NCBI GenBank assembly: GCA_965202585.1
Contig: OZ241830.1
Location: 54,002,001-54,066,000 of the forward strand
From: Thalia democratica
Lineage: Eukaryota
Direction of reading: 5' to 3'
DNA: 64,000 bases
The notes below the pieces were generated by a model. That model did no database searches. It saw only the letters and a list, made by a program, of their open reading frames with translations, and was not told where the DNA came from. The position numbers and the translations under genes are program-made. Below, piece by piece: positions 50,268 through 64,000 of the stretch; position 1 is the stretch's first letter; the number at the start of each line of letters is the position of its first letter.

Positions 50268-50334
50268 ATGTCGAGACGCAAGCAAGAAAAACCCCAGCAC
50301 GTGTTAACTCCTACTACGGCTACTGATGACAAAG
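50268..50334 (+). CDS. BCL11: BCL11 coding exon 1 (MSRRKQEKPQHVLTPTTATDDK)
   Basis: Not in the ORF track; read directly: atgtcgagacgcaagcaagaaaaaccccagcac; phase-1 gtttgt donor fits the 57291 acceptor. Confidence 0.9.
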
Positions 50335-53300: not shown

Positions 53301-56300
53301 ATAATAAATATCGCGATATATAGTAGATTTGATGAGAAATATTAAATAGTTTGAGTTGTAACAGTTAATTTTTTTTAGTACTGTTAAAAGTTATTGTAAA
53401 ACTATTTGTACTTACTAAATAAGCTAATTTTTTTGATTAAATTGATAAAATTTTCGCATCTCAAATAAGCCCAATACATACTTAAAGTATAAATATAAAG
53501 ATATAATACAAACAAAACACAATCACAATGTGTTTTTATAATGTTAAATTAGAAATGTTTTAAAGGAAAGTAAATATAAAATAAAGCTATAATATGCATA
53601 TTTAAAAACTCAAAATAGGTTTTTCTAAAAGCGTAAACTTAACTTTGAATAAAAGTTACAATTTTTTTTATAAATAATAAAATAAAAATATGTTACTCAG
53701 GTGAAAACAGGTTTAATTGAGGTTAAAAAGTCAAACTTTAATCAAATAGGCCAAACAATTAAAACATATTAAACATATAGTTGAAACATTCAAACTAAAA
53801 ATTCAACTATTTTAAATTTATTTTGAATAAAACAAGACAATGCGATTAACACAATACCTTATAAAAAAGATATGCTAAGTTTATAAGTTTGTAACACATC
53901 AATATATTTACCAGGGTGCAGAACTATTCAAGTTCGGACAATTCAAATTCTTAGTAAAAAATTGAAACAGCTAAATATAATAAAAATAAAAATTGATATA
54001 AATTTTTATAAAATAAAAAATGCATATGTAAATCATGTTATTATCAACAGGCCATTTTTTTCTTTTTGCAAAAAAAATAAATATTCTTTGAGATATGGCT
54101 TAATTAAAGTAAAAAATTTAGTCATTTTTAGAAATTTTAAAATATATTGTAAAATGTTTTAGATTTTCAAAAAAGATAAAAGTGGCTTGTATAAATTAAT
54201 AAGATCTACATACGCATTTTTTATTTTTTTCAAAATTATATTACTTTTTGAGGTATAGTCTTTTAAATATTTTTTTTTAGAATTTGAATTGTCGGAATTT
54301 GAGTTGTCCGAATTTGAATTGTCATGTAACCATTTACCAGTTAAAAATTTTTACCTAATATTATTCTTTAGTGAAATGGTTGATAAGTATTTTATAAAAT
54401 CCTCTTAATTCTATGTGTCTCTTAAATTTTATTAAAATTATCATTTTTAAACAAAGTTGTTTATTTAAAAAGTTAGAATAGCCAGTTGCATAATGTATAT
54501 TTAAAAATAATTTATAATGGTTTCCGTAACATAAATCAATAACTTTTTTTTTGGTATATCAGCTTGTTTATATAGCTTTAAACTTTTTACAATTTAATAA
54601 TTGTTTTACTCTAGCTTTTCACTGGTTTTTATTCTAACACAACATTTTGGTTTGATATCAACAATACAGAAACCAATAATATTACATATAAGAATAAAGA
54701 TTAAACTTAAAAAAAATTTTTATTAAGTTTATAAACTACATGAAGCCTTAAAAACAACTTACATGACCCTTTAGTTGATTGTTTTTCTCAAAAATATACC
54801 AGCAAATTTTATAATTCCCAAGTTTTATATAAGAAAGACTTAAACGGATTAAACAAATGAGCTAGTAGCAGAAATATATTTTAAACTATTTTAAATCCAT
54901 AGATAAAACGGAGTAAAACCCTTTAAGAAAGAGTTATAAAACTCAAAGCCATTTAATTTGCATAGCTAAAGCTGAGTATTGCTATTGTGAAAGTAGTTTT
55001 ATTTATTACAAGCTTTTTCTCTTTTTATTCTCTCGGTCAATTTTTGTGTGATTTGTGATATATTTCTTTAATTTCTGTCATGCGAATTGAATAAACAAAG
55101 GATTCAAAGTTCTTCCAAAAGTCGTAAAAATCTATTAAAATAAAAATTATATTATCTTAATTAACTTTTAATTACACAGTTAAAATAATTCTGATAGACG
55201 TTTTTTATAAAACGATGAAAAATAATGTATTAAAAATGTTTTTCAATAGTTTTTTTTTTCTACTGTTGTTTTTTTTCTTAAGTATATTTCAAATACATAA
55301 AAAAACATTATATTTTTTTAGTTATTTAATTTTAAACTAAAAAAATAATACACCAACAAAGTAAAATAATTTTCAATGTAACTATCTAGGTTTTTATTTA
55401 AGTTAAATTTAAACTTATCGACTAGCGTATACTACTAATTGAGTTTTTTAAACTTAAAGTATAAACAATAAATATTAGCTGTACTTTTTCAATAAACACT
55501 TGAGATAATAAAGCTCCAAAAAATTAGCATAACACAGTGAAAAACTAAAACTACTTACAATACATTTTTACTGCTAACAGAAATTAATAAAAAAATAATA
55601 ATTTTTTTGATTAATCTAGTTTATAAAACTTTTTGTGCATAATAAAACTGAAATCCTTTTTTTTTTGAGGATATTTAACTATTAAACTTTAGACAATACA
55701 AAATGACACATCTATCCCAAGTTAATAAGCAAAAACGTAAGTACTATTTAAAATGAAAGTTTTTATTTAGAAACCGAGCTACAATCTAAAAAATTCGTCT
55801 TTAACTTTTAGCGACAAATGATAAATGTGCATGCAGGTGTCTAAAATATGTAAAGTTTTAAAATACTACACAACTAAAGCATACATTTGAACTATCTCAA
55901 ATCAACTAACTTGTACGTCGAGTGTTTTTTCGCTCTACTTTAATGTTTGTATTGCGTTGTGTTTATACTTTTTTAATTGAAATGACATTTAAAGTTCCGT
56001 GAACTAAAATCTTCAAAAAATTTTAAGAAGCAACGTCTCAAAAAGTGTTAAATTCTAAAATAATACCTATATAGGTCTAAATGATAAGATTATGATCGGA
56101 ACAAAAAAAAATATATATAGAAAATAAAAAGTTACTAAGAATTGGTGTTTTTAGTAAGTTAAAAAACTTGTTTTAACTGTATCTAAAAAAAATTTAAAAT
56201 CTTATGTAGGTCAAAGTAATATGATTATGATAATAAATTATTTTGTTTTTTAACATTTATTTTAAACAAATTAGCAATAAAGAAGAATTATTAAAATTTG

Positions 56301-59300
56301 AGCTGTTTGAATTTGGACAGGTCAATGTTTACTTTACGACATTTGTGTGTTTTCTAGCCCCACATGCGCAAACAATAAAACAATTACTCATCAAAAACAC
56401 TGTTCGGTGTATTTTTTGTCATTTAATAGCAAATTTCATTACTTAGCATTTTAATGCGTTTTGAAATTATTTAAAAAATATTTTGGTTTGTGTTTAGACT
56501 AATCAAAAGCATTTGTAAAAAACCTACGTTTTATTGAATAACGGTGTGTTATATAATTTGTAACTCTAAAAGTTGTAGACAAAGCAAATAGGCTTAATAT
56601 ATAAACACTTTTTAGCTTATAATTAGGTTTAACGTCAAGTAACTTTACAAGTTAGTCTAGAAGTTAGTTTTTAGATGCACGGTAAGAAGCCGTCGTCTAC
56701 TATACAAACTTATCAACAACTTGAGCTTAAAAAAGTAGTTTTACCTTCAAAGAAGATAAAAAAGACTGCTGATTTATATGTAGATGAGTGTTTTTTATCT
56801 TATGGACAGTACTATCGCGAAGCACAAAGTTGTATCATAAACTGCATTTAGTTTTTTAAAGTAGTTTTCCAGTAAAATATGCCTAGAGATAAACTAGGGT
56901 TTAGAAGTATTCATGAAGTTAATTTGAACAAAATACCTTCCGAAACATACCAACTTAGTAGAGATGATATATGTTTAAACCATAACCATACAAAGACAAG
57001 TAAAAATGATATGATGAAAGCTTCCACTGCTTTTTGTGTTCCTGATAGCCAAACTAAATCCGCCTTTTCCTTAAATATGAAATATTTAAACAAAAACAAT
57101 TATTTAAGTGAGTTAATTTTAAGAGAACACGTCATGAAATAACTTGCTACATTTCAAATTTGTGCGTTTGGTTTTTAGTTCAAAATAAAAGTGGATATTT
57201 TACGTTGTAATTTTTTTAGATTTCGAATCAAACTTAACTTTTAATAACTATGGCAATTAGATTTTTAAACAGTCTGAAAAATGTTTTCAGGTATCGATGG
57301 TCTACGACAGAATAGTAAGACTTTTAGACAGATTCCGGAAGGAGAAGACTTTATAACATGTGGAAGTTGCCAATCTAAATTTGCACTTTCTGAATTTGCA
57401 ACATTCGTTTCGGTTGGTTTAAATATATATTTAATCTTAACTTTCAATTACGTGTATATATATATAATAAATAGTGAATTTTCTTTAGTAGAATAAAGTT
57501 TTCGTAAAACAGTTTGTTTAAAATACGCATTTTATATAGGTTTTACAAACTAGTTAAAACTTAGCATGGATTTGTTTAGATATTAGGAATTTTTGTAAAC
57601 TACATAAATTTTTGTAAAAACAGTGGACAATAGTTAAGTTTTAAGTTAACTTTTATTCTTAACTATGAAACTAACTATATTTTTGCTGAATTTTAAGTAT
57701 AAGCTGTTATTATATAGTTGAAATAAGTTATAGAATGTTGTAGATTTTTTTTATAACAATCAAGTTACAAAAAATTATAACATATCGTATATTTTCTCGA
57801 GATAAAAGCTTTATTTGTCAATTTATTTGTGTAGGTACAATTTTAAAATAAACAAATCTTTAAGTACAACTTGTGTCCCACCTGGTTTCTTGTAATCACT
57901 TTAAACTACTAAAATGATCAAAAGTGCTTATTACTTACTTTTGTGTATTAGCCATCACAGTTGCGCTCGCAAGTACACACCTGAGCTGGCTTTGCAATGG
58001 ATACTGTAAATTACTTTGTAGATATTTTTCTTACCAAAGTATATATAATTTATGTCTAAAAATATAAAATTATCCTATTTGCGGACACGTTTGACTGTAC
58101 TTTTTAAGTTTAAGGTTTGTATCACCATTTGTCGAGCACATAAACTTAAAAAACAGTTAAAGTTATTTGGTTTCAATGTTACTAAACAGCTTTGTTTTTG
58201 TATATATATTGATTAATAACTTAAAAAGAATATTGTATGTCATTATCCATTAGAATTTAAAATTTTCCACAAAAGTGTAGCAGATAAGTATATTAAAAGA
58301 TATTTATTTTAAAAAACATAATTAAGCTAAATTAAAATTGTTGATATTATAAAATTATTATTTATGCATAATAAATATTTACTCTTTATTAATATATATT
58401 CTATACAACATAAAAATTACAAAAAAAAATTGAAGCGAGCCGTGCTGCCATTTTTTTCGTACCAAGGGTCAGTACTTTAAAATAAACTTAAGTTTGTTGA
58501 ATATTGATTTTTGAAATTCGAACATATTTATTTTTTAAAATATTTACCAATTTAAAGTATAATTTGTCTTTATTTATAAACAAATTTATTAAGTTTAATA
58601 GAAATTTCAAGTGTGTAAAAGAAAAAAGTCTTTAGAAAGAGCAAAACAAATTAAAATATTGTTTTTCGAAAAGAAAAGTTACTGAAATATTCAAGCGAGT
58701 CTGTTGATAAAAACACTTATCTAATAGATAAAATTAATTGATATGTTTTAAAATCTGATTTAAACTAATACTGAATATTTTAAAAAAAAGTATATATACA
58801 TTAAAAAAAAACACGTTTTACTTAGCACAAGAAAGAGTGTGAATTTGCTAATAACGAAGTCAGTAACTTGATGGCTCAGCCTCCAAGCATGCTCAAAAAG
58901 AAACGGATTCTTTTCAACCAATCAATTCACAATGGTTGCACAGATGTAAGCGACGATAGCAACCAATCTGAGATTTCTACGAGTTGCGACATGAAAGCTT
59001 TAGATTTGGAAAAAAGTTAGTTTTCAAAAACTTATTATTTCTCTTGTTAAAAAAACAACCGATGATGTTAAAATAAAAAAAACTAATAAAAGACCCTTTA
59101 CAAAAATGACCTACTCAAATATTGAAGCTTAAAAGATGTTTTTTTTTTTTGAGTTTGTTTAATCTTGCCTATTTAAAATTATATAAATGTACATCACATT
59201 GTTTAATTCGATTAGCTCAACAAGCTTAACGAAATCTTGCTGCCCTAAGTATAATAAATTAACTCCTGACGAACAGAGACATTTTTATTGACTTTCTTAA

Positions 59301-62300
59301 GTTTTGGTATTTGAACTACTTGAGTTTCGCGATGTGGGATAAACTGTTCGCCACTTGACTTACCAAGTCGAAGGAGTAGTTTATTTTGATAAATTTGAAT
59401 TCGTTTGCAAGTACATACTACGGTCGCGAGAGAGATAGTTCAAGTGTCTAGTTTAAACATAAAAATGTTTATCTTAAATTTGAGTCAATTAAATTCTACT
59501 TTGTTTGAAATTTTCGAAATAACTCGTTGTGCTTTTTTTCAGTGGAGCAATTGAGATTAAGACAATAGTATAGTGCTGTCTTAAATAGCCTATAATATGC
59601 TTAAAAAACACGATTTTCCTTAAATACTTAATGTTAAAAAAAAAAACAATTACAAAACAATTATCTTATTTAGAGCACTAGTTTTAGCAAGAAACTTATA
59701 AACGATAAATCTAAACTTTCGAATGTTTTCTGTGTTAGCATTGATTTACTTTTTTAAGTACAATTTAAAAATTTTAGTTTTGTTAAACCATTTGTATAAA
59801 ATCGTTTTAAATTGTACTGTACAAATTAGTTCTTTGTAAACTTTTCGACTATCTTTATAAAATATAATTTTATTTTAGCCTTTTAATGCTTAAGGAGGTT
59901 GTTTTCTGAATCTATTCGTTTTATTATAGTTTACTTATAAGAAGCTTAATAAAAACAAAACTCTTTATTAGCTTGATTAAGATAGAAAAACTTATTTTAT
60001 TACAACTGAATTTTATAAATTAAACTAAAAATGTTGTATTGTACTCATTTTAGAAGTAACTATTTTATTTATTTAGTAGTACCGATTTAAATTTTATTTC
60101 TATGCGATGTTTCTTAAGTCTTACTTGATGAATAAATAAATAAAATACATTTATATTTATACTTCAGCTCTTATAGAGTTATAAAACAGCTATTTTGCGA
60201 ATTCAGTATAAAGTTTTATATAAAAAAATACTTACAAAACATTACATTGTAAATAAAATTTCAAAGTTAAATAGATAATGAGCAAGAAGTTATTATAGAA
60301 ATAGTATAAATAATTTTAATAAACGGTGTTAAAATAAATAACAAAGTTTAAAAAAAAAATATTTCAAAGCAATTTTTTGTTCTACTACTATAAAAAACCG
60401 TTTGGTCTAAGTTTAACTTTTATCAATAAACATTAATACGCTGTTTGTTTAAAAAAAAATGTATATGCAAGGTCATGCATAACAATGATAAACATACATG
60501 CTTGCTTTGTAGCGCTTCCACACACACACACTCGCACACAGAAGCTGCACAACAATCAACAAACACGCAAGAGAAAAAATTGCGCTTGAAATTTCGCGAC
60601 TTGTCGTCTGCTCCAGCTGACATTGCCATCTCGCTTTGTTTTAGACGAGCGTTCGATGCTGGTCATCGCGTGACGCGCTCGACTGATCATCGCTTCCTTG
60701 TCGTCTGAGAAATTAATAAGTCGCCCCTTTACTACGTGCGCCTCGCACGCCCGTGCTTCCTAGACTACGTCGAAAGTTATAGGGCTGCCGACGAATAGCA
60801 AAGTTGAAGCTAGTCGCTGTTAGTGATGTTTGAATTTTTGTTTTAGATTGACGACCGAGGCTATTTTTAGCATTTCAAATACATCGAAATTTAGTTTAGT
60901 TAATCTTTATACGAGCGTTTTATAATTGGTATTCGTACTATTCATAAATGCTCAACCTTAGCGGATACGTTTTTAAGCCTCTTTAGCAACTATATTTTAG
61001 TTGAATTTTAAGTTGTGTTTATTATTATAAATTGTATACATAATTATCTTAACAAAAACGTTATTTTTAACTTATTAGTTTTACGTACATAAAATTTGAG
61101 TAAAATTTTAAGTTTAGTTAACGTATAGTTGTAATGGAAAATATATTAAGAGATTTATTTAGGAATAAAACTTTACTGAAATTATTGTTTTTTTTTTCAA
61201 TGTTAAAATTTTGTAAAATTACAAATTATATTTTTATATCTTATAACATTAGCATTAACATACATACTAAATAAAAAATAAACAAGTATGTCCACAACCA
61301 GCTTTTATTATAATTTTTTAAAAGGATTTTTAAATTTCATTGGTTGTAATTGAAACTTTATTTTTTAGAAAATGAAGAATCAGCAGTTTTTAAAGAAGGA
61401 TCAGCATCTGATTACATCAAAAAGATTAAACAAAATTTAAGTTTGAATGGTGAAGCTAACAATAAACAAGAATTAAGTTTCAATCTTAGCGAAAACAACA
61501 GCGTTCACCAAACTTCAAAGTAGTCAAAAAAATTATAATAGGTGTTCATGATTATTAAAAAAAATATTTTCTTGTTGGTGTTACGTTCATTCAAATTATT
61601 ACTAACTTTTTTAATAAACGCATTAATAATCTAATTTTTGTAAGATTTAATATTAAAACTTAGTACGTTTCTTTTTTTAAGCACTAATTAAAAGTACTTT
61701 ATTTTTTCAGGGAATTCAACAATTCTTTGCCCTCATTGGTGCTTAAAAACTCGTTACTTGACAAATACAATTCTGAAACTTTCGATAGCATGAACACTCT
61801 TGAAAATAAAAGTCTTACAAACTTATGCGATGAAGCTAAAACAGTCAATACCTCTTCAAAAAAATACCAAAATACAGAAAATAAAAATGGAGTCGCAACA
61901 ACAAACCAGCAAATAGCACTGTTAAACCTTTTAAACTCGACGGTATTGCGGTCAACTGGAGGACAGGAAAATAATATTTTTTCAAACTGTGACCCGATCA
62001 CAATGTCGCAGTTGATGATAGGTCGCAGTTTTGATCCGTTGCAACTTGCACATCAAGAAAACATGTTTTCAAAGTTTTACAACTTAAAGGCTACTGCGAA
62101 AACAAAGCAAGTAGCTTACAGTTCGGATAGCGAGATTAAGTCAGCGGATGACGTCAACAATCCAAATATGTTGATAACGTCATCGCAAAACAAGCCAAGT
62201 AACGTGACTTTAGGTCATCATCAACTGATTGTAAATGGGACAGGCTATAGTGAAAAGCTTAAACAGTTGGCTAATGGCATCAACAGTGAAAAAAGCGGAA

Positions 62301-63849
62301 GAAATTCATATTTGGACAACCTAAAAACAGAAGGTAAAGTTTTTTGGAAATTTTAATTATGTTATATTTATAAGCTTTATGGTGTAATTACCTTCTAAGA
62401 AAACGTCAATAAAAAACTTAAACTTTAATTTTAGAAAATTAACTTTATTTGATACAAATTAAAATTATTTTTGTACTAATTTTAGGTTCTGCAAAAAAAA
62501 AGAAGTTAGTATAGTCTTAAAATAAAATAGTTTCTGCTAAAAAAACTATTTAATAATACTTAAAAAGATTTAAGCTAGCTTTAATAAAAAATTCAAAGCA
62601 GATTTAATCAAAAAGAAGGAAAACTTGGATACTAGAAAACTGAAGAAGTTAGAACAAAAAGAATTTAAAGGAAGCTGCTCAGATAGTGATGTGTGTTTGA
62701 AAAAGTTAGTTTATAAAGTTTTTACTTTGAAATGGCCAATTTTTGTAAAGTAAAAAAAGTGATTTTAGTTATATCTATCTTTATTTTTATAGTAAACCTG
62801 TAAATGACGAAAACACTCGGTTAAGGTGTAAGTCTTTGCCAACTGATGCAAGCAAAGTAAAGTACAAAGTAAACGACTTGAGCATCTCAAATTCGGATCG
62901 TTTAACGTTTAATTCTGACAAAAATTTAAACAAGCAGCTCTCTACTGAGTTCAGCAAATCAATTAGCAGAAAGCGCTCTTCATCAAAACTCGAGCAATTA
63001 AGCTCTGCTTTGGCTCCAAAACCAAACGAGCCCTTGTGCCAAACCATAACTAAAAAGAGAAAAGACACACAAAATAAAAAAGAGCTGGAATCAAATGATT
63101 TTATTGAAAGTGAAAATATTAAAAAAGAAGAACTTAAGTCGTATATTAATCTTTCAAGAGAATCTATAAAACAAGATGCAAATATCTCTAAAACAAGTGG
63201 TACAGACTTTAATAGGACAACAGTAAATTTTAATGCGTTTGGGAATGGATATAATCAGTTTAATGGTTCTCCTCTTTCATTGCCCGGTATGTTTTACAAT
63301 TTATTTAAAGTGTTTAAAATATTTAGATTATTAGTTATTGCCTCAACTTTAGCTTTATAAGTATAAGTAACAACCAACTTTATTTGCATTTCAGAATCTT
63401 TCAATCCGTTCAATTTTTTGATGCCCCAATCAAACATTCATCAAAGTCCGTTTCAACCTCCGCTGAATAACATACCAAACCTTTCATCTAAATTAAACCC
63501 AACTTTAAAAATGTGGCCGCTTAACTTGCAACAAAAAGGACCAGCGTCTAATTTTTATGGCAATCATATACCGATTATGGACCTTGCTTCGCAACCTCAA
63601 ATAAGAGCTGGTGATTTGACCTCAATGGTAAAACCTCACCAACGAGTTATCACATCTAATAGAGATTTTGTCAATCGACCACATAGTAACAATAGGGTAA
63701 AAAGCATTAACAAATGGTCGTACGGGTTTGGAAGTAATAACTTTTCGGGTGGACGAAAAAGTTCATCTTCGAGTGAAAAGTCTGGATCGTCGACCGGTGG
63801 AGTAACGAAAAAAAGAATAAGAAATGACACTTGTGAATACTGTGGCAAG
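50268..63849 (+). CDS. BCL11: BCL11/CTIP (chronophage-like) zinc-finger transcription factor, 3'-partial; exons 50268-50334, 57291-57412, 58826-59015, 61369-61519, 61711-62333, (62486-62504), 62579-62704, 62793-63286, 63395-63849, continuing beyond the window
   Basis: N-terminus MSRRKQEKPQHV (BCL11 MSRRKQGKPQH motif); CCHC finger EDFITCGSCQSKFALSEFATFVS/HKKEC split over two exons; RIRNDTCEYCGK at the end matches the BCL11 C-terminal finger cluster start; exon phases consistent (2247 nt, 749 codons). Confidence 0.9.
53915..54331. mobile_element. Mutator-like MITE in BCL11 intron 1, perfect 9-bp TSD atttaccag
   Basis: GG termini, subterminal gacaattcaaattc repeats, TSD at 53906-53914 and 54332-54340. 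Confidence 0.88.
56879..57107 (+). CDS. Candidate alternative first coding exon of BCL11 (MPRDKLGFRS..., 76 aa)
   Basis: 76 open codons from ATG to a consensus gtgagt donor in phase 1, matching the 57291 exon; upstream ttttccag acceptor at 56872. Confidence 0.55.
57291..57412 (+). CDS. BCL11: BCL11 exon, first half of CCHC finger
   Basis: ttttcag acceptor; DFITCGSCQSKFAL; gttggt donor. Confidence 0.9.
58826..59015 (+). CDS. BCL11: BCL11 exon, second half of CCHC finger (HKKEC...)
   Basis: cttag acceptor then cac aag aaa gag tgt; open frame to phase-1 gttagt donor. Confidence 0.85.
61369..61519 (+). CDS. BCL11: BCL11 exon
   Basis: ttttttag acceptor; phase 1 to 2 bridges neighbours; gtagtc donor. 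Confidence 0.75.
61711..62333 (+). CDS. BCL11: BCL11 exon (S/N/T-rich region)
   Basis: ttttcag acceptor, ORF 61727-62356, gtaaag donor. Confidence 0.85.
62486..62504 (+). CDS. Possible 19-nt BCL11 microexon (GSAKKKN)
   Basis: ctaattttag acceptor, gttagt donor, converts phase 1 to 2; not obligatory because a second acceptor at 62574 also restores frame. Confidence 0.45.
62579..62704 (+). CDS. BCL11: BCL11 exon (K/E-rich); start 62579 or 62575 depending on microexon use
   Basis: Open frame FNKKFKADLIKKKE..SCSDSDVCLK, phase-2 gttagt donor fits the 62793 acceptor. Confidence 0.65.
62793..63286 (+). CDS. BCL11: BCL11 exon
   Basis: tttatag acceptor, ORF 62836-63360, gtatgt donor. Confidence 0.85.
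63395..63849 (+). CDS. BCL11: BCL11 exon ending in NDTCEYCGK (start of C2H2 finger)
   Basis: atttcag acceptor, gttagc donor; pyrimidine tract at window end suggests the next acceptor lies just past 64000. Confidence 0.9.
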
Positions 63850-64000
63850 GTTAGCTTAAAGACTTGTTTACTTTTTAACTCTCTTTGTAATTTATTTAAA
63901 AGCCAGCTTTTGAAAACCCAATAATATTGAAAAAATAACAATCAATGAAATTAACAATTTTTAATTATCGCAAATGATTTTTTTATTGTTTATTCCTTTT

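Follow-up and report, generated by a model that had tools for sequence, protein, structure and literature searches.

Does the first intron of the BCL11-type gene of Thalia democratica hold a second first exon, from which a BCL11 protein without its recruitment motif for the nucleosome remodelling and deacetylase (NuRD) complex could be made? BCL11 proteins work to a large extent by recruiting NuRD (and the Polycomb repressive complex 2, PRC2) to DNA via their first few residues, and these residues are carried by the first coding exon. The window analysed here is a stretch of 64,000 nucleotides (nt) corresponding to C6:54002001-54066000 of an 802 Mb assembly; it is strongly AT-rich, with a guanine plus cytosine (GC) content of 20-35% per kb, and the 5' part of the BCL11-type gene occupies it from position 50268 onward. 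A sequence-only reading of this stretch had singled out a frame of 76 codons, initiated by an ATG and ending at a GTGAGT donor in the phase needed for the CCHC zinc-finger exon, and all of its coordinates check. The frame opens with the ATG at 56879-81, preceded just 5' by an in-frame TAA at 56873-75, runs for 229 nt to 57107 and there meets the donor, in the same phase as the canonical exon 1. Intron 1 of this single-copy gene holds a second first exon, and we consider it likely that this exon has its own promoter and gives an in-frame isoform lacking the NuRD motif.

The RNA evidence was taken from four marine metatranscriptome runs of one study (X1-X4), examined over 56300-62299, X1 and X2 being runs of the same sample; the run search also returned DNA runs of two coded organisms. 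It consists of assembled contigs, whose ends need not be true 5' ends. One X1 contig (record 1, 3501 nt, depth 90) is colinear with the genome over 56449-57107, and one X2 contig (record 3, 3097 nt, depth 26) over 56617-57107. Both then show the GT..AG joints 57107>57291, 57412>58826, 59015>61369 and 61519>61711 and run on past 62299. The first of these joints, from the donor at 57107 to 57291, is the one that had been named beforehand as an RNA check. Neither contig carries exon 1 sequence upstream of the alternative exon, which supports the earlier proposal of an alternative first exon and of a BCL11 N-terminus that lacks MSRRKQ. The X1 and X2 contigs show no loose letters, either at their 5' ends or at 56873 or ahead of 57291, and no loose end before 57291 was seen in any of the four runs. 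Apart from one contig of 218 nt at 60521-60734 (X1) and two fragments of about 20 nt (X2), introns 2 and 3 are without any coverage in these two runs, and the colinear leader is therefore mature mRNA and not carry-over of DNA or pre-mRNA. X3 and X4 gave only downstream or intronic pieces. The motif-less form is the only BCL11 form assembled in the one sample, over the interval examined. In the alternative frame, the RNA haplotype differs from the window by six bases, which give four synonymous codons and one Ser-to-Asp codon. The mRNA begins at or upstream of 56449 and carries the ATG-initiated frame, which splicing joins in phase to the CCHC exon and those beyond it.

The alternative exon also exists in two related taxa, both known from Tara Oceans metagenome contigs, which are genomic and were found via an 87-residue read-through frame in two protein clusters (taxon A, L005 and L009-L016; taxon B, L002-L004). 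Like the RNA runs, these contigs derive from marine plankton. Over the alternative frame, taxon A is about 92% identical to the window at the nucleotide level and 86-88% at the protein level, and taxon B about 72% and about 50%. Both taxa keep the ATG, the in-frame TAA just upstream, the coding length of 229 nt and phase 1; the GTGAGT donor is present in all related contigs, and the CCHC exon follows it at about the same distance as in the window, where the intron measures 183 nt. Relative to taxon B, the frame contains two indels of 3 nt each, those of the flanks measuring 1, 2, 5, 6 and 13 nt. No stop interrupts it in any of the three taxa; the five remaining frames have 2-14 each. The ratio of non-synonymous to synonymous substitution rates (dN/dS) is 0.39 between the window and taxon A, 0.47 between the window and taxon B and 0.55 between the two relatives; between the window and the RNA haplotype it is 0.11, a value based on six changes. 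In a neutral simulation at the window-B divergence the frame stayed open in 2.4% of cases, and in a shuffle preserving the observed types of substitution in 4.8%, the synonymous count reaching the observed one in 2.9% of those. Against taxon A, 56600-57199 is 89-94% identical, typical intron sequence reaching 72-80%; the three intervals 55800-55999, 56300-56499 and 56600-57199 all have exon-like identities of 89-96%. Judged from these comparisons, the coding constraint on the alternative frame appears real but loose and weak, as would fit a disordered N-terminal extension.

These contigs also bear on how the 5' end of the exon is formed. The sequence-only reading had taken the AG at 56871-72 for an acceptor, serving either a poison exon of the canonical transcript or trans-splicing of a spliced leader (SL). 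Its arithmetic holds, exon 1 joined to 56873 reading ...DDK-VKYA-stop; the acceptor itself found no support, as the RNA contigs are colinear through the site from 56449 or 56617 and the dinucleotide is GG in every contig of taxon A and AC in taxon B. SL trans-splicing at 56873 lacks support on the same two points, the contigs running straight through and the AG being absent in both relatives. For a poison exon entered at 56873, the donor is used, no use of the acceptor was seen and the AG is not conserved. In its wider form, this explanation has a cassette, spliced in after exon 1 and ahead of the CCHC exon by way of the AG at 56872 or 56446, truncate the canonical frame and lower BCL11; it is highly improbable. 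Exon 1 joined to 56873 does meet a stop after four codons, and joined to 56447 in the window it reads G+CA TTT TAA; however, no contig joins exon 1 to either acceptor, no loose ends occur at 56873 or before 56449 in the interval examined, and in taxon B the 56447-type junction gives no immediate stop. Moreover, a poison exon could do without an ATG-initiated frame that is conserved and in phase with the exon after it.

The longest RNA contig begins 3 nt after an AG (56445-46) that is conserved in both related taxa and follows a T-rich tract. This would suit a scheme without any separate promoter, in which the canonical pre-mRNA is SL trans-spliced at that AG and the 5' end at about 56447 is an acceptor. 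We regard this scheme as quite unlikely, since no loose leader letters stand at the 5' end of the contig (record position 1 is 56449), although loose ends of 9-17 letters occur elsewhere in the output. The X2 contig ends at 56617, suggesting that the ends are limited by coverage; moreover, the entire block around the AG is conserved, not the AG alone, and a TATA-like element lies about 25 nt upstream.

The preferred reading, a promoter of its own for the alternative exon, draws on this conserved block (56315-56460, block A). The block ends at about the X1 contig start, and its flanks are barely alignable to taxon B (about 54% identity). Within it, a conserved TTTTTTGTCATTTAA element spans 56414-56428, and its TATA-like core CATTTAA (56420-56426) lies about 25 nt upstream of 56449. 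Block A, and perhaps the further conserved block at 55880-55977, is probably the promoter of the alternative exon. These two blocks are contiguous in taxon B and are separated by about 340 nt in the window and taxon A. The sequence in between (55978-56314), which splits the conserved upstream region and has no counterpart in taxon B, is probably an insertion, perhaps of a mobile element, that arose in an ancestor shared by the window species and taxon A.

In the leader, the ATG at 56675 is the only upstream ATG common to all three taxa. It opens an upstream open reading frame (uORF) at 56675-56851, whose start and first 17 codons belong to block B, a block that contains GCACGGTAAGAAGCCGTCGTC and is 92% identical to its taxon B counterpart. 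The four changes in these 17 codons are all non-synonymous and the length of the uORF varies (58, 22 and 20 codons across the taxa), so that block B appears to be a nucleotide-level element, not a conserved peptide. A search of 55500-61200 against Rfam returned no family at E up to 1; the conserved blocks are therefore not known RNAs. The long leader with five short uORFs, one of them with a conserved start, suggests regulated translation.

That the gene belongs to the BCL11 family is indicated by its N-terminal motif and its CCHC finger. The canonical exon 1 (ATG at 50268, end at 50334 in phase 1), the first coding exon, translates as MSRRKQEKPQHV and begins MSRRKQEKPQH, so that it supplies the N-terminal RRKQxxP (MSRRKQ) motif in its published definition (PMC6644156). 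A CCHC (C2HC) finger follows, split over two exons: the Pfam model PF25491 (CCHC_BCL-11A) matches at 57353-57409 with 28.6 bits (cut-off 27), the sole above-threshold match genome-wide, and exon 3 continues with HKKEC. Exon 1 joined to the CCHC exon and the alternative exon joined to the CCHC exon are both stop-free through exon 5. The window stops within the gene, and just the start of one C2H2 finger is visible (DTCEYCGKV, in the open reading frame at 63418-63924); this finger fragment gave no Pfam match. Canonical exon 1 is presumably in use, given the conservation of its motif with vertebrates.

What the alternative exon puts in place of this motif can be compared with the known requirements for binding. 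In the FOG-type motif, Arg-3, Arg-4, Lys-5, Gln-6 and Pro-9 directly follow Met-1; Arg-4 enters an acidic channel of RBBP4, Arg-4 and Lys-5 are critical in FOG-1, and the R3S substitution in BCL11B, which causes craniosynostosis, lowers the affinity about ten-fold (PMC6644156). In the window and in taxon A the alternative N-terminus begins MPRDKLG, in taxon B MPKENKS. It therefore has Asp or Glu at position 4, Leu or Lys at position 6 and no Pro-9, and does not conform to the FOG-type RBBP4/7 motif. Because of the acidic residue at the critical Arg-4 position, it should not bind RBBP4. The sequence-only reading had described it as a degenerate look-alike of the NuRD motif, a description that the comparison did not support: taxon B reads MPKENK, the R-x-K pattern is lost there, and across the taxa only M1, P2 and one Lys are invariant among the first residues. 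The likeness appears to be a chance product of K/R-rich sequence and gives no hint of residual binding.

The alternative exon is single-copy in the 802 Mb genome. With the 76/87-residue frame as query, no Pfam match was found; a word search of 5.8 billion proteins with the alternative frame returned matches from the two related taxa only, and an exhaustive HMMER search of 1.84 billion representatives returned the same two taxa plus P0003. The latter, a 4241-residue S/T/N/G-rich repetitive protein, was rejected as a low-complexity chance match. The spliced transcripts through exon 5, sought in the protein collection, retrieved only genomic metagenome contigs of taxon A, full-length spliced products being beyond the length filter, for want of a long stop-free reference. 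A search of the ESM Atlas with the alternative N-terminus gave no usable match, and AlphaFold2, run on an alignment of five sequences, gave no usable model (predicted local distance difference test, pLDDT, 51.5; predicted template modelling score, pTM, 0.13). The alternative N-terminus thus appears to be a lineage-restricted sequence of 76 residues without a confident predicted fold.

Taken together, the following mechanism can be proposed. A transcript starting at about 56449 in intron 1 uses the GTGAGT donor that follows 57107 and is joined there to the CCHC exon at 57291; translation from the ATG at 56879 would swap the canonical N-terminus of 22 residues, whose RRKQxxP motif binds RBBP4/7 of NuRD and PRC2, for one of 76 residues. 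With fair support, we infer that the alternative frame is translated. From what is known of the family, its product would lack NuRD/PRC2 docking through RBBP4/7. The CCHC self-association finger and the remaining protein would be unchanged, so that the isoform would bind the same DNA; it could also mix with canonical subunits, bringing less or no NuRD. The CCHC finger has been implicated in BCL11B dimerisation (PMC7158892, PMC8079813). The two isoforms could then act as the on/off repressor switch that the sequence-only reading had envisaged. A bolder version, which we hold to be doubtful, is a cofactor swap: the invariant segment TKSAFSLNMKY (residues 59-69), just ahead of the CCHC finger, would serve as a short linear motif recruiting another partner or altering oligomerisation. 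If that were true, one DNA-binding body would toggle between NuRD-dependent repression and another activity, by promoter choice and uORF-controlled translation.

Several points weigh against an alternative exon that is coding and frees BCL11 from NuRD. The RNA support consists of assembled contigs from a single sample and a single study, with no counts, strand or true 5' end. By itself the open frame is unremarkable, ranking about 19th of the 10,357 stop-to-stop frames in the window, 21 of which are at least 87 codons long; it stands above chance because of the exact RNA junction 57107>57291 and because the same ATG, 229-nt length, phase and donor recur in two related taxa. A 5' end at 56449 leaves five upstream ATGs before 56879, which is unfavourable for translation, their frames all closing before 56879. 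Taken individually, the shuffle tests of the window against taxon A and against the RNA haplotype are non-significant. Relative to taxon B, changes at the three codon positions number 18/17/28 in the alternative exon (p=0.17) and 2/1/16 in the CCHC exon. Codon-level conservation, also named in advance as a check, is supported by the open frame in two relatives and, weakly, by a dN/dS of 0.39-0.55, and not by the codon-position test. The last 78 nt of the frame are 87% identical to taxon B, synonymous sites included, and a nucleotide-level element, for example a splicing signal, may overlap them. As to the loss of RBBP4 binding, it is deduced from one position, and vertebrate Bcl11b fragments without the motif are still able to bind RBBP4/7 in vitro (PMC8079813).

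Some of these points could be accounted for if the exon were a real alternative first exon that is non-coding, a 5' untranslated region whose open frame is a by-product of nucleotide-level constraint, translation starting from a downstream AUG, e.g. in exon 3. The outcome would be a protein without the NuRD motif and without the first half of the CCHC finger, or a regulatory transcript. The five ATGs in the leader and the weak codon-position bias fit this idea, as do the conservation of the 3' part of the exon and of block B at the nucleotide level, synonymous sites included, and the lack of homologues, of domains and of a well-predicted fold. It is nevertheless unlikely, as it does not explain why the ATG is kept, why every taxon has a frame of exactly 229 nt in spite of indels, all of them of 3 nt, and why the donor phase equals that of the canonical exon in all three taxa. 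Zero stops were found in three taxa at about 28% divergence and a GC content of about 24-29%, only 2-5% of the simulated or shuffled neutral versions being open, and dN/dS is below 1 in all comparisons.

The arrangement that we favour, two first exons of which only one carries the NuRD motif, resembles that of SALL2. SALL2 has two promoters 11 kb apart, for E1 and E1A, whose N-termini measure 25 and 23 residues; MSRRKQRKPQ is present in E1 alone, and in most tissues E1A is the predominant form (PMC7937961). In SALL2 and, on the reading favoured here, in the present gene, a shared zinc-finger repressor body receives different N-termini, one form having an MSRRKQ-type motif, and a second first exon with its own ATG is spliced to the common downstream exon. 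The two first exons of the present gene are about 6.5 kb apart (about 11 kb between the SALL2 promoters) and both are in phase 1 to the shared exon. Unlike SALL2, the gene belongs to the BCL11 family, the alternative N-terminus has 76 residues instead of 23 and is lineage-restricted, and the loss of NuRD is here predicted from sequence.

With vertebrate BCL11 proteins, the gene shares an N-terminal RRKQxxP motif (here in exon 1) and a CCHC finger; the layout of the family also includes C-terminal C2H2 fingers. The isoforms of vertebrate BCL11A and BCL11B (XL, L, S, XS; alpha, beta, gamma) result from alternative splicing further downstream and begin with the same N-terminus (PMC1526750). The NuRD-interacting domain is present in all of them but mouse Bcl11a-XS, which is without the motif and the CCHC finger (PMC7158892). 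Unlike in these isoforms, only the motif-bearing exon is swapped here and the CCHC finger is retained. Several isoforms and transcription start sites are annotated for Drosophila Chronophage (CG9650), the fly BCL11 homologue (PMC9482335; bioRxiv 10.1101/2024.09.08.611891), and its cloned RL isoform begins ATGTACAACAAAATGCTGTCGATC, not encoding MSRRKQ (PMC9482335). In the literature we found no analysis of this N-terminal difference or of a link to NuRD, and the Chronophage N-terminus has no sequence similarity to the alternative N-terminus described here.

Two factors of other families may be added. In a preprint, a human ZNF423 reference protein is described as lacking the N-terminal MSRRKQAK that recruits NuRD (bioRxiv 10.1101/2025.05.30.656936), and MECOM is reported to give PRDM3 and a shorter EVI1 without the PR-SET N-terminus, together with a direct interaction of PRDM3/PRDM16 with NuRD (PMC6379669). 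The two cases show only that factors with an RBBP4 motif recurrently lose their N-terminus via alternative 5' ends. A promoter-type switch is known for SALL2; the putative one described here would be new for BCL11 and is limited to a small marine clade.

If correctly interpreted, the alternative exon provides a natural, expressed isoform retained by selection, which keeps the oligomerisation finger and the remaining protein and drops the NuRD tag. Recruitment of the repressor complex would then be tunable by promoter choice in BCL11 as well, as in SALL2, and the isoform would amount to a natural separation-of-function allele, telling which BCL11 activities need NuRD. The gene model is corrected at the same time, since the transcript found in marine RNA begins within what is annotated as intron 1. 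In practice the finding carries modest weight, as an already known principle is involved, only a small clade has this N-terminus and the function is a predicted one.

The features of the locus are collected in the table below, with positions counted from the first letter of the window.

Table. Coordinates of the canonical, alternative and shared exons of the BCL11-type gene and of the associated elements in the window.
Feature	Position	Strand	Details
Canonical BCL11 exon 1, coding part	50268..50334	+	MSRRKQEKPQHVLTPTTATDDK plus 1 base; donor GTTTGT; carries the RRKQxxP NuRD/RBBP4-binding motif; from sequence and translation
Conserved non-coding block upstream of alternative exon	55880..55977	.	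Alignment with L016 and L002; 91% to taxon A versus 72-80% intron background
Conserved block A, putative promoter / 5' end region	56315..56460	+	80% to taxon B over 136 nt; 91-96% to taxon A
Alternative first exon as seen in RNA	56449..57107	+	At least 659 nt; leader of about 430 nt plus coding part; X1 and X2 contigs
Conserved leader block B	56658..56730	+	92% to taxon B, 93% to taxon A; holds ATG 56675 (MHGKKPSS...)
AG proposed earlier as acceptor	56871..56872	+	Unused in the RNA observed; not conserved
Alternative exon, coding part	56879..57107	+	76 codons plus 1 base (229 nt); 3' part 57030-57107 (TKSAFSLNMKY) nearly invariant
Intron spliced out of alternative transcript	57108..57290	+	183 nt, GTGAGT...AG; joint 57107>57291 in X1 and X2
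CCHC zinc-finger exon, first half of finger, common to both isoforms	57291..57412	+	PF25491 match; RNA joints on both sides
Exon 3 (HKKECEF...)	58826..59015	+	Joints 57412>58826 and 59015>61369; frame check
Exon 4	61369..61519	+	Joints 59015>61369 and 61519>61711
Exon 5, start	61711..62299	+	RNA contig runs on past 62299; frame check

In exon 5, at 61850-61865, RNA haplotypes were observed that have small deletions summing to 9 nt (in frame) and clustered substitutions relative to the window. This is a low-complexity, Asn/Thr-rich part of BCL11, of variable length within the population.

Three further blocks of the introns stand out by their identity to taxon A, against the same background of 72-80%. 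A GC-rich island in intron 3 (60430-60800) is 92-96% identical and has no Rfam match; in run X1, the separate 218-nt contig at 60521-60734, of depth 3.8, lies on it. Another internal promoter or first exon may lie here, or else a non-coding RNA that is missing from the annotation. The block at 59200-59499 is 91-96% identical and has no RNA coverage in the four runs. In intron 2, a non-coding element at 57900-58100 without Rfam match is 98% identical, above the coding exons, and an X3 RNA contig over 57833-58133 spans it.

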